Positions 30,392 through 38,105 of a DNA stretch of 64,000 nucleotides are shown here, piece after piece. The stretch is from Oopsacas minuta. Its lineage: Eukaryota; Animalia; Porifera. Position 1 is the stretch's first letter. Each line of letters begins with the position of its first letter. Both the position numbers and the translations under genes were made by a program. Location: positions 496,001 to 560,000 of the forward strand of contig JAKMXF010000044.1 of NCBI GenBank assembly GCA_024704765.1, in the 5' to 3' direction. The notes under the pieces were generated by a model. That model had not been told where the DNA came from. It ran no database searches and was given only the letters and a program-made list of their open reading frames with translations.

Positions 30392-32105
30392 TTATATGTT
30401 AGGAGACTCACGACAATTGTGACAATAAAAGTTATCGATGTCTTTGTCAATATCTTCAAGTCCTACACATGGTTTGTGGAACCATTTAAGACATTTGGGA
30501 CATTCAATCATATTTTTTGACGCGCAACTGGGTAGATGACATAAACACCATAACTTTATCTTTAAATATGTCCCTAGATTTGTAGTCAGGCGAGATCGTA
30601 ATATTATGCTTTCTATCTTAGGAAAGGGTTTTAAAATTTCGCTGTTGAAACAATAAGTTAGGTGAGATCTCATTCTTGACTGTTTCCAGTATACTTGGGT
30701 TAGGTCGCCTCCCGTTGCTATTGTCAAACAGACTGCCGCTGCAAATAAACCACAATCCGCCCCACCTCTTTGCTGCTGAATAGGAGCAAGGGCGACTTTC
30801 AGCTCATGATCAGCATCATTCCCATATAGAAAGGTCAATTGCACAGCTAATTCATCAGATATTCTCCCAGTAGATAAGCGAATCATATAAAGTTACATGC
30901 CCTTCAACATCAATACTGGAGCAAACCCAGTGAAGTGCGCCATCGTGATGCAGTTGTATACTAGGACGAGGAGCTTTGACGAATTGACGATTCTAAGAAT
31001 TAATTGAATATCAAATATTGATTTACAATTCAAAAATTTAAACCGAGAAACTCACTTCGGAGAGAATAGTATCCTGAAGTCCCTGTAAATGGGGGAAATT
31101 CTTCTTCAGTAATGTCTACAAATACATATTTGGTATGAGAACATTCGCTAACAAAACGGATTGAATTTCAATGTATAATAAACTTACACAGAATGCATTA
31201 ATGGTGGTGCCTGTTAGAAAAGTATTACGACTTGACAATTCGGAAATTGCCAAGTTTTTCTCATTTAAACTAATGGGAGGAGTGATTATTTGAATAGGAT
31301 CCAATGGCTTAACTCCGAGTAATGTCACCAGACTGGAAGTTGGGGTAGGTGTTTGAGGATCTGAAATAGGTTTGTTCGAAGCGATAACGGGTTGCTGAAA
31401 AAGCTCATCGAAGGAATCATCACTAGTATCTACATCAGATTCTTGGTGTATTACATCTCTAGCGAAATCAAGAGATCTAGATCGGTCACGGTAGATATCA
31501 TGTCGCGATGCTTGAGAAGAGCTTGGAGACTTCTGAGATTGAGGGCGAACTGAAACTCGCGCTTTCATAGAGTAATCCTTATATGATTCTATTATCATAC
31601 GCAGATGAATCTTACATGCGCTTTTTATGTTTTCGAAAGGGACTCTTTCGGGCCAAAAAGGTGGTTTGAGAGAAGGATCATTCCAAAAAACATACCTTTC
31701 CCTAAAATACAGAGATATATAATCAGCGACCCATATAATTATATAAATTCGCACCGTTGACTTACCAGTTGACACTTTTATAATCACAGAAACAAGTCTT
31801 CGCAGTCCCTGTACATTATAGCCAGATATATCTCCATCTAATAGCTTGAGGATTTCGTGATCACGAACAGGCTTTGATGACGCTGACGTACTTGTAGATA
31901 TTTGGTTAGTCAGTAGAGTTCTTGATATTTCAGCGCTATTCCCAGTGATATAGCTTTGAAATTTTTCTGGACCCAAAGAGCCAAGCTTTCCATGCCATGA
32001 AAATACAGCTCCGGCATATTCACCTGTTACTGAACGAAACTCAGATAATATGTCTGTCAGTACCATTATAGCATTATTCTTTGTCAATTTGGGGATCTTT
32101 GGCAT
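30392..32105 (-). pseudogene. NRF1-like DBD + Ulp1/C48 protease + PHD finger gene of element A
   Basis: KVSTG...FWNDPSLKPPFWPERVPFENI (NRF1-like); GLQDT, HWV...YDS, QQQRGGADCGLFA (Ulp1); WCLC...CPKCLKWFHKPCVG...FYCHNC (PHD). A one-base frameshift lies near 30876. Confidence 0.8.
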
Positions 32106-32302
32106 TTTGGCTAATCAAGGGTACAGAATGGGAAATCAAGAGGAAACACTCATTGAGTAAAGTATAAAGTTAATTGAGAAACATATTTAGGGATTTTGCT
32201 AATAAAGGAAGTAGAAATAAGTAACAAAACTCAAAAATTAATATCAGTTCCTGCGGATTTAATTACACTATAATAGGATGTAATTTGAGCATATATTAAA
32301 AA

Positions 32303-32425
32303 GTACTGTGCGCATGTCCATTAAGTACTGTGCGCATGTCCATTAGGTACTGTGCGCATGTCCATTAGGTACTGTGCGCATGTCCATTAGGTACTGTGCG
32401 CATGTCCGTTAAGTGCTGTGCGCAT
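32303..32425 (+). repeat. Left subterminal array of B: ~5.6 x 22-bp GTACTGTGCGCATGTCCATTA(A/G)
   Basis: Direct tandem repeats read from the sequence. Confidence 0.95.
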
Positions 32426-32802
32426 ACATGTAAAAATATTTATTCAATTTGTTGTATGCATATATAATGTTACTACGGTTGTATGCATATATATTGTGAA
32501 TGCAGGTCAGAAAAAGTAATATCACGAATTGTACGTATTCCGATATCAATAGAGCTCGTTAATACGAACAGGGTTAAGGCGTAACTCCGGATAAGGACTA
32601 CAATTTTGTCCCCTTTATCAGTTCCCTTCGATGCCTTTTCAATGTAATTAGTTCGGATAATACGTACTCCGGATAAGGAGTACGTATTTTGGCAGTCCCT
32701 TGTGTACGTAATAACGAGAGTCTACTTACTACTCTGGTATAATTCTCTCACTGTCTCATACAATAAGAAATAATCAGTTTCATCCTTCTCACCGGTTTAA
32801 AC

Positions 32803-35800: not shown

Positions 35801-36157
35801 AGATTTTTAATTTAATCTATGTAATGCTCTTAAAGTGCTAAGCATACGTACTTACTAGCATTATATAATAATAACTTCTATATTATCATTAGGGAACCCA
35901 AACTTTTCAAAGATACTACATTCTTGGTTGATCGCTTTCACTGGAAGAATCATTGCTGCAATCCAGCTTATTCTTTGAAGTCAGTGAAGAGTCATGATTT
36001 CATGAGAATAAACTCTCAAGTTTGCGAGCAGCTGTTCTCTACATTAAGGAGAATAACCACCCAAGTATCTTTCATGCGGATCGAAAACATATTCTACAAT
36101 GTACGATATTTCTTATACTGTTTGAATGAACAAGAATTACGAAAACTAAAGTGCTAG
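32803..36157 (+). CDS. KDZ transposase of element B, apparently intact (~802 aa, 7 exons)
   Basis: Exons 32803-32989, 33069-33227, 33593-34159, 34245-34410, 34589-35401, 35504-35755 and 35893-36157 join in frame with GT-AG introns. Motifs ICPLC..PEFLIMDG, IIYDNACNL, VDRFHWKNH and NSQVCEQLFS. Confidence 0.85.
33304..33406 (-). mobile_element. ~100-bp mini-Helitron in intron 2 of the B transposase
   Basis: The minus strand reads TCTATATTATTTAATCTCAATTGTTGTTTGTCCGTT (same 5' end as 19087 and 51696), then the hairpin ACGAGCC-AAA-GGCTCGT, then CTTGT. Confidence 0.55.
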
Positions 36158-36219
36158 TAGCTAATACACTATTCATGATTCATGAATAATGAATAAATTG
36201 TAAAATTAACAAGTATACT

Positions 36220-38105
36220 TTAGATTCTCTTTACTAAACTCTTTTTGCTGTTACAACTTTTACAAATGAACGAGGAAACCTTTTGTGTAATATCCTGTAG
36301 GCCAACACATGGTTTGTGAAACCATTGGGTACACACTTGACAATTCACCATATTCTTAAAAGCGAACTCGGGTAGACGACAAATACACCAAAGTTAAATT
36401 GTATATTCCAACTTCTTATTGACCTTTATCCGTGAACAGAGTCTTTCAGAAATTGTAGGCAGGGGTGATAATTTTTCAGAAATAATGAAATTACGCAGGT
36501 GACGTCTCATATTGCCCTGGTTCCATCTCAATATACTTGGTTCTAAACCATTCGCTAACGCGATACTAACTACAATAGCAAAGACACCACAATCTGAAAT
36601 CCCTCTTTGTTGTTGTAGCTCTTGAACTGTAACTTTTAAATCTTCAGTCTCGCTTCGATAAAGCAGTGCAAGTTGGATGTCCAGCTCTTCACTTAGACCC
36701 CGGATTAATAACGAATCATATACTGATATATTTCCTTCATCGTCAATCCTAGACACTTTCCAGTGTAGTTTACCATCGTGGTGTATTTGAAAACTATTTA
36801 GTGCTGCTCTAACAAATTGGCGATTCTAATAAGATAAAAGACATACAATTTGAAATGCCAATTATTTCAGGACGATAAAATAAGCAAAATAATAGATTTA
36901 CCTTAGATAAAATAGTATCCTGGAATCCTTCAATGTCTGGATAATTATTCTTTATCAAAACCTAAACATAATTTATTAAGTAACCTAGTAAAAGTTGTTT
37001 AGTTGTTTGTCGAAGCGAAGTGCGAACGTAGGTAATAAATGGTATTGAAATGTAATATAATTAAATCATAGAGAGAGCTTACCCCAAAGGCGTTGATAGT
37101 CACATCACTAAGAAAGGTTTTGTCATTCGATAGCTCTTTAAGACAGTCATCCCTTACTTTTTCGTCTAAAATTCTCATAAATGTTACATTTAATGGAATT
37201 AAAGCCTTTGCTGCTGATAATCCTGCCATTGAAACTACAGATGTATCCAAAAGAGACTGAGAGGAAGTAAAGGGTGAGTGATCGGGTTGCTGTTCTGATA
37301 TGGTATTTGGTGTTGAATGGATCGATTCACCAAGATATAGTGGAGACGATGGGCATTTCTCTGGAGAAGTATTTAGAGATATTTCCACATTGGAATTCGG
37401 AGAGGAAGGTGAATGATCAGTTGGATTATATACATTCTCGTCATCCAAGTCTGAATCTAAACAATCTTCTTTTGATAAATGTATAGGTGACCTGTCTCTA
37501 AAACTATCAGATAGATCTGGAGAAAAGTATTCACGCATCGATTTGATAACAGATAGCAAAGTAGTTCTGCCCATATTCTTTGATTGCTTGAGAAATGGAA
37601 TTTCCTTGGGCCAAAATGTTGGCCGGAGTTCACTTTTCCCCCAAAAATTACGCGGTTTTCCTACAATTAAAATATGATATACGCATTACCAAATTAATAC
37701 TTACTTAAGTATTACACACCAATTTGTTTCAACAGCAGTACATACCCTGTACCCACGAAATAACAACAAAGGGTGGCTTCCAAAACTAAGGGTAAGAAAA
37801 ACAAGAAACTTACTGTTCATCTTTTGAGTTCCCCATGATAAAATCTTTCTTAACGCATGGACATTATGTGTGTGTGGATCTTGTTTCATCAGGTTCATCA
37901 TTTCATCTTCTTTATAATCATCTCGAACAACTGATGAGTCTCCGACCACAGAGCGTTCAAATGTTAAGCTTCGCCAAATTTGTTCTTTCATTTCAGCAAC
38001 ATGCTGGCGGTAAGTATCGCTTCCCAGAACTGATATTTGTCCCCTCCAGGAGTAGACAACCCCTACAGATTCTCCCGTTACGTTGCCCTTGGTAATACGA
38101 GGCAT
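36220..38105 (-). CDS. NRF1-like DBD + Ulp1/C48 protease + PHD finger gene of element B (single in-frame TAA before the PHD)
   Basis: ATG at 38105; intron 37813-37661; RKPRNFWGKSELRPTFWPKEIPF; GFQDT; HW..YDS; QQQRGISDCGVFA; TAA at 36394-36396, then in-frame LWCIC...CQVCTQWFHKPCVG...FICKSC. Confidence 0.75.

Follow-up and report, generated by a model that had tools for sequence, protein, structure and literature searches.

The DNA analysed here, called the window throughout, is a 64-kb stretch of the genome of the glass sponge Oopsacas minuta, and coordinates refer to window positions unless a locus is named. The assignment to this sponge is borne out by LOD99_* proteins, to which translations from the window are 80-93% identical. 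Two nested DNA transposons of the Kyakuja-Dileera-Zisupton (KDZ) class span 26972-38839. Each has a multi-exon transposase gene on the plus strand and, convergent with it on the minus strand, an accessory gene for a protein that joins an NRF1/EWG-type N-terminal part to a C48/Ulp1-type cysteine protease and a PHD finger.

Two nested KDZ transposons and their gene pair

The outer transposon, element A, has its left and main part at 26972..32289 (+) and its right end, with the inverted terminus, at 38747..38839 (+), and its 33-nt inverted ends pair 26972-27004 with 38802-38834. Element B (32290..38739, +; 6450 bp) is inserted in A and is flanked by a 7-bp duplication, ATTTGAG, at 32283-32289 and 38740-38746, the former being the final 7 bases of the left part of A, a target duplicated when B inserted. 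The elements are thus nested and not side by side, a point missed in a previous sequence-only reading of this DNA and shown by locus L001 of the same genome. This locus holds an un-nested copy of A (15086-9817, 98.1% identical over 5294 nt) that joins window position 32289 straight to about 38741, and B was therefore inserted into A. The un-nested form is also confirmed by contigs from public runs, in which the flanks before 26968-26972 differ, so that the A family must be multicopy. In the window, element A is flanked by a TTGTA microsatellite, which masks its target-site duplication. Contigs of other A copies diverge at 27736-27800 (loose ends before 27742 and behind 27800, with a depth peak), which is a further insertion in some copies or a small repeat itself.

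One exon of the transposase gene of A (27189..30384, +) matches positions 76-135 of the Pfam KDZ profile, and spliced contigs place GT..AG introns in this gene at the joints 28407>28642, 28807>28889, and 29693>29785. The transposase gene of B (32803..36157, +) matches the profile with the exon at 35511-35801. Single exons of A, B, and a related element (L003, see below) match profile positions 75-135 and 151-202, and the spliced Oopsacas gene models P0092 and P0096, the former 97% identical to the B transposase, carry PF18758. The elements belong to the KDZ class, as PF18758, inverted termini, and a target-site duplication were all found. The duplication around B has 7 bp, against 8 bp reported for an element of the Dileera group that is filed as Zisupton-1_PGr (PMC12730594).

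The accessory gene of A lies at 30392..32105 (-), with exons at 32105-31766, 31701-31188, 31115-31056, and 30992-30392, and that of B, which has the same architecture, at 36220..38105 (-), with exons at 38105-37814, 37660-37083, 36961-36902, and 36825-36220. This is where the sequence-only reading had placed a second, convergent gene in each KDZ element. Introns 2 and 3 of gene A are confirmed by spliced contigs of run X1 (joints 31115>31188 and 30992>31056, CT..AC). The 64-nt intron 1 is absent from the spliced joints listed and is placed by its GT..AG ends, by the paralogue P0002, and by an exon-1 end conserved in about 30 fragments, in all of which the first intron follows STG and is in phase 1. 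Since introns of both the accessory gene and the transposase gene are seen in spliced contigs, the element family is transcribed and spliced.

Both window copies of the accessory gene are pseudogenes. Gene A has two frameshifts, one where the T-run at 31685-31690 is one base short (other copies have an extra A behind 31684) and one caused by a surplus base at 30876 that is left out in all runs. Reads of other copies established that both are private to this copy, and with both mended the gene matches the frame of P0002, an intact 485-aa paralogue carried at L001. The 329-aa open reading frame (ORF) of A stays open only through the retained first intron. Gene B has an in-frame TAA at 36396-36394, directly before the PHD finger, which is thereby cut off.

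The accessory gene belongs to the transposon, because the inverted ends enclose it and it has moved together with the element (98% identity). Ten further loci (L002-L011) from five ENA assemblies were compared by tblastn. The sequence-only reading had proposed searching genomes for NRF1-like and C48 genes convergent with KDZ transposases, and the pair, PHD finger included, is present at five of these loci in four other assemblies (L003, L004, L009, L010, and L011), with proteins 30-55% identical. Divergent lineages have thus kept the gene pair, in agreement with the view taken in that reading of a separate accessory protein of the KDZ transposon. Among the other loci, L002 is an internally deleted copy, L008 has fragmented pieces of both genes, and L005, L006, and L007 have NRF1-like exons only. 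At these last three (in L007 at 10001-10821) there is no C48, PHD, or KDZ gene within 10 kb, and L006 has two inverted NRF1-like copies beside DDE_3/HTH genes; these exons may be carried as passengers by other elements, or they may be solo or domesticated copies. Inside the deleted element of L002, beside its 24-nt end array, lies a 31-nt satellite repeated 69 times (5759-7903).

An NRF1-type domain joined to a protease and a PHD finger

The NRF1-like motifs quoted in the sequence-only reading are present in the translations of the window copies. These copies score 13-14 bits on Pfam Nrf1_DNA-bind (PF10491; gathering score 23.5 bits), with a match of about 13 bits spanning 26 residues (Pfam E 0.04-0.09), and phmmer against PDB gives E 0.2. 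Such weak scores arise because an intron and a frameshift split the domain in the window ORFs, so that intact paralogues are needed. Three paralogues exceed the cut-off (P0003, 25.4 bits; P0004, 24.4 bits; P0061, 25.2 bits) and two fall slightly under it (P0097, 23.0 bits; P0002, 21.6 bits). No contig position was found for P0097.

A phmmer search with residues 1-172 of P0002 against a library of 1.84 billion protein representatives returned 53 relatives, mostly exon-1 fragments, and reached a true NRF1/P3A2 protein of 513 aa (E 7.9e-4, query 3-143 against target 95-243), which has the cluster name DNA-binding protein P3A2 and scores 367 bits on the NRF1 profile. By hhalign, an alignment made of transposon sequences only matched this 513-aa protein at 94% (E 1.4e-7) over 148 columns, spanning both parts of the domain. 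This transposon-only alignment also served to build an AlphaFold2 model (m5de9964e222b; predicted local distance difference test, pLDDT, 83), which was compared with known folds by Foldseek. NRF1 crystal structures, 8k4l and 8k3d among them, were its top three matches in the whole PDB, the five best matches among Swiss-Prot models were Ewg, NRF1, and P3A2, and NRF1-domain proteins headed its fold matches in the AlphaFold cluster library. In VIA-align, model residues 86-162 superposed on NRF1 186-277 with Z 9.2, a root-mean-square deviation of 2.5 Å, and 27% identity. Residues 7-70 match the MADS domains of SRF/MCM1 (Z about 5), and the dimerisation domain of NRF1 itself resembles the SRF MADS domain (Z 5.9; PMC10810270). 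The N-terminal part thus consists of an NRF1/EWG-type MADS-like dimerisation domain followed by an NRF1-specific DNA-binding domain, and the profile and structure comparisons with the NRF1 DNA-binding domain that the sequence-only reading had suggested both gave matches. The resemblance to NRF1 greatly exceeds a chance likeness.

Three residues of NRF1, R206, N242, and R244, have been named as base contacts (PMC10810270). The equivalent of R206 (R102) is nearly invariant in the alignment. The Asn of N242 is retained in A, L003, L004, L009, and L011 and replaced by K in B and by S in L002 and L007, and at the position of R244 there is K (A, L004), R (L002, L009), T (L011), Y (L003, L007), or S (B). 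The transposon protein has no Pfam match to Nrf1_activ_bdg and no N-terminal region with a nuclear localisation signal (NLS); its NRF1-type domain begins at residue 1 and is followed by the C48 and PHD domains. The gene therefore shares a domain with NRF1 and is not its orthologue.

Automatic annotation already names some of these proteins NRF1-domain proteins. The fold matches of the model in the AlphaFold cluster library also include long proteins with an internal NRF1-like domain, namely A0A1X7VTI8 (881 aa), A0A6P4ZFT9 (826 aa), and the chromo-domain protein A0A812BZB5. In these the domain may have undergone additional fusions, perhaps on mobile elements of other kinds.

The central domain is a C48/Ulp1-type cysteine protease with a complete catalytic set. 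The Ulp1 signature HW...YDS...QQQxGxxDCG (H-D-Q-C) is present in P0002, B, L003, and L004, and the catalytic Asp and Cys and the oxyanion Gln are invariant in 26 sequences. On Pfam C48 (cut-off 20.7 bits) the scores are 20.2 bits for P0002, 21.4 for P0129, and 33.8 for P0133. The top fold matches of a model of this domain (pLDDT 87) are Ulp1, SENP5, SENP1, and SENP2 (E 3e-6, template modelling score up to 0.60), and NEDP1/Den1 and bacterial CE-clan deubiquitinases also occur among the matches. The Ulp1 protease of the sequence-only reading is therefore present, on the evidence of Pfam matches in relatives, catalytic motif, and fold.

The PHD finger, which had been recognised in the same reading, has a C4HC3 zinc pattern and scores 24.2 bits in the window copy A (Pfam cut-off 24). 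Its best match in the PDB is PHF2 (E 5e-12), followed by PHF8, BPTF, CFP1, and KDM7A. The PHD fingers of these five proteins are readers of histone H3 trimethylated at lysine 4 (H3K4me3), and to judge from these relatives H3K4me3 is the likely ligand here as well. The sequence is very close to the PHD fingers of PHF2, PHF8, KDM7A, and BPTF and includes the cage Trp of WFH, whereas the domain context differs, as the transposon PHD finger follows a C48 protease and not a JmjC domain or bromodomain.

The sequence-only reading had given the protein a combined function of site-specific DNA binding, deSUMOylation, and histone reading. The NRF1-type, Ulp1-type, and PHD domains are all present; that the enzyme would act on SUMO and not on another ubiquitin-like substrate is suggested by its fold alone. 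The octocoral Paramuricea clavata, among others, has C48-PHD proteins in which no NRF1-like part is recognised. Two proteins, P0002 and P0132 (Paramuricea clavata), have the NCBI name "Calcium-responsive transcription factor"; no Pfam ALS2CR8/CaRF match was seen in them.

End repeats, NRF1 sites, and the surroundings of the elements

The left subterminal array of A (26982..27056, +) has three 23-nt units, TGAGTAGCGCATGCGCTGCATTT, with two exact copies of the decamer GCGCATGCGC and one copy with a single mismatch. Two further sites are located in the right end of A, at 38787-38796 and 38809-38818. All four exact occurrences of GCGCATGCGC in the window thus fall within the two ends of A, and when up to one mismatch is allowed there are 8 matches in the window against 0.25 expected by chance. 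L001 has three exact copies, only at its two ends, and exact copies are also found in two distant lineages of other assemblies, in the ends of L011 and at the one readable end of L004. GCGCATGCGC is the canonical NRF1 site, and it is carried in the end repeats of three lineages.

Element B has about six 22-nt units, GTACTGTGCGCATGTCCATTAG (repeat family D2), in its left array (32303..32447, +). Its right array (38141..38734, -; family D1, inverted pairs I1-I24) repeats the 22-nt unit about 25 times, in the orientation opposite to that of the left array. The other lineages have arrays of 21-24 bp period at the matching position with other cores; the core is GCGCATGTCC in B, ACACATGTGC in L003, and GATCATGATC in L002 and L009. 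All elements read except L010 have a CATG-centred (pseudo)palindromic decamer in their repeat units. By analogy with NRF1, these palindromes fit a dimer whose conserved Arg would read TpG in each half-site. A code relating the 242 and 244 equivalents to the repeat core was considered and rejected, as it is contradicted by L009 and L002, and we claim no co-variation between these residues and the cores.

The NRF1 site in the subterminal repeats is the strongest functional clue at this locus, and it had been missed in the sequence-only reading, as had the nesting and the pseudogene status of both accessory genes.

The nested transposons begin 1.35 kb downstream of the large subunit (LSU) gene of a 5.8S-28S ribosomal DNA (rDNA) unit. 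This unit (20260-25621) has the 5.8S and a complete LSU but no more than the final ~100 nt of the small subunit (20260-20352), and is either truncated on its 5' side or an orphan. On the other side, an intact ORF of 322 aa at 43330-44298 (+) has an ISXO2/IS1595-like DDE domain (61 bits) and is flanked by near-identical short ORFs in opposite orientation (41789-41980 and 44703-44912), an arrangement that points to a further transposon, one whose inverted ends are long.

Function, origin, and known systems

Taken as a whole, the locus is best explained by an element-encoded, end-binding accessory factor of a two-gene KDZ cut-and-paste transposon, a reading that we consider reasonably probable. 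The accessory protein would dimerise and bind the subterminal repeats of its own element on both sides, and a deconjugating activity of the SUMO type or for another ubiquitin-like protein, together with a reader of H3K4me3 chromatin, would thereby be brought to these ends. This may help to assemble the transposition complex, in the manner of the second, end-binding proteins of PIF/Harbinger and CACTA elements, or it may instead keep the inward-facing end promoters free of SUMO-dependent silencing. End binding itself is a prediction from sequence, and a probable one.

Several observations weigh against this reading. A profile made from exon 1 only does not find NRF1 by sequence in the PDB, its top matches being chance ones (FrvX), so that the N-terminal half of the domain is assigned by hhalign and fold. 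The protease may act on SUMO, NEDD8, or ubiquitin, to judge from its fold matches. Both window copies are dead, so that activity at this locus cannot be judged. The repeat core of L010, GCGCTGGCGC, is not CATG-centred, and L009 has the N/R pair of NRF1 and yet the core GATCATGATC. Alternatively, it could be the N-terminal cysteine-rich domain of the transposase, or the NRF1 of the host, that binds the repeats.

Binding by host NRF1 is the basis of the main rival explanation, in which the GCGCATGCGC arrays are promoter elements for the host factor and the NRF1-like protein is a captured host domain that serves as competitor or mimic, autoregulator, or decoy. The arrays are well placed for such a role, as they precede the first coding exon by 130-230 bp at either end, and NRF1 is a promoter-proximal activator that can activate unmethylated retrotransposon promoters (PMC12420836). 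The explanation is weakened by the non-NRF1 cores of sister lineages, as GATCATGATC, ACACATGTGC, and GCGCATGTCC are expected to be poor sites for NRF1, whose affinity fell when any base of the GCGC half-sites was mutated (PMC10810270). Nor would a host factor change in parallel with every element lineage, and promoters do not usually have arrays of 6-25 units. We regard this explanation as unlikely.

Target tethering is less probable still. Here the DNA-binding domain would hold the ends while the PHD finger docks on H3K4me3, directing insertion to active promoters, and the protease would be secondary. It has in its favour an architecture that couples a sequence reader with a chromatin reader and a PHD finger closest to the H3K4me3 readers PHF2, PHF8, BPTF, and CFP1; however, H3K4me3 binding is deduced from these relatives only, and of the two insertions seen, one is in another transposon and the other near an rDNA unit. 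That the accessory genes are host or domesticated genes merely lying beside transposases, with an NRF1 likeness that is a short motif without common descent, would suit the 13-bit, 26-residue Pfam match of the window copies and is hardly credible otherwise, given a gene that travels within the inverted ends at 98% identity, many degraded copies, the same pairing in other assemblies, and full-domain profile and fold matches to NRF1, by which this explanation is already contradicted.

The origin of the shared domain is a separate matter from end binding by the accessory factor. The NRF1-type domain might be an ancient end-recognition module of KDZ elements that evolved in each lineage with the palindromic subterminal repeats of that lineage. 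Animal NRF1/EWG and the many GCGCATGCGC sites in promoters would then descend from a domesticated accessory gene and its dispersed sites, which we think improbable. Capture of a host NRF1 domain by a transposon fits equally well as a transposon origin of animal NRF1, and nothing in this analysis favours the latter. The fold has relatives in fungi and is therefore older than animals.

No NRF1-type domain in a transposon, nor this architecture, was found in the literature searched, where earlier mention in the papers on Zisupton (Bohne 2012) and KDZ (Iyer 2014) is possible. The same search found no paper joining Zisupton and Ulp1, although the sequence-only reading had stated an association of Zisupton/KDZ elements with Ulp1-like peptidases. 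NRF1 is a major promoter-binding factor of animals whose family had so far seemed isolated, and its domains are now found on a mobile element. Exchange between the NRF1 family and transposons thus becomes testable by trees and binding assays, and the elements offer a natural setting for the joint divergence of an NRF1-type domain and its likely sites from lineage to lineage. For the Ulp1-type proteases of several transposon groups, delivery to the element's own ends is a testable role. Experiments are feasible, as the element is small (5.35 kb) and L001 has an intact copy.

Compared with NRF1/EWG/P3A2 (PF10491; PDB 8K4L, 8K3D), the transposon protein has a MADS-like dimerisation domain and a DNA-binding domain in identical order, the motif WxxxxxKPxxWPxxxPF, and the conserved TpG-reading Arg, and the cognate decamer GCGCATGCGC adjoins its gene. 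It differs in its fusion with a protease and a PHD finger, in the absence of the N-terminal NLS region and the C-terminal activation domain, in that its gene resides inside a multicopy transposon, in the K, T, Y, or S found in place of R244 in several lineages, and in an identity to NRF1 of 17-27%.

Second DNA-binding proteins are known from other two-gene DNA transposons, such as the Myb-like ORF1 of PIF/Harbinger and TnpA of En/Spm-CACTA. These systems too have a gene for a separate sequence-specific protein beside the transposase and sites repeated subterminally at both ends, whereas the elements described here have an NRF1-type fold, additional enzyme and chromatin-reader domains, and a transposase of the KDZ superfamily. 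VANC of the Arabidopsis VANDAL elements recognises short repeated motifs of its own family and alters local chromatin; it is an unrelated protein that works through loss of DNA methylation, and the likeness extends only to the anti-silencing role that we infer. Accessory genes are known in KDZ elements, for example TET/JBP in fungi (PMC12477816, PMC12730594), and Ulp1-like proteases in the KI-MULEs, which are plant Mutator-like elements. In these systems, as here, a C48 protease or a chromatin-modifying enzyme is carried aboard a DNA transposon, whereas the protease of the Oopsacas elements is joined to a site-specific DNA-binding domain with likely sites in its own element.

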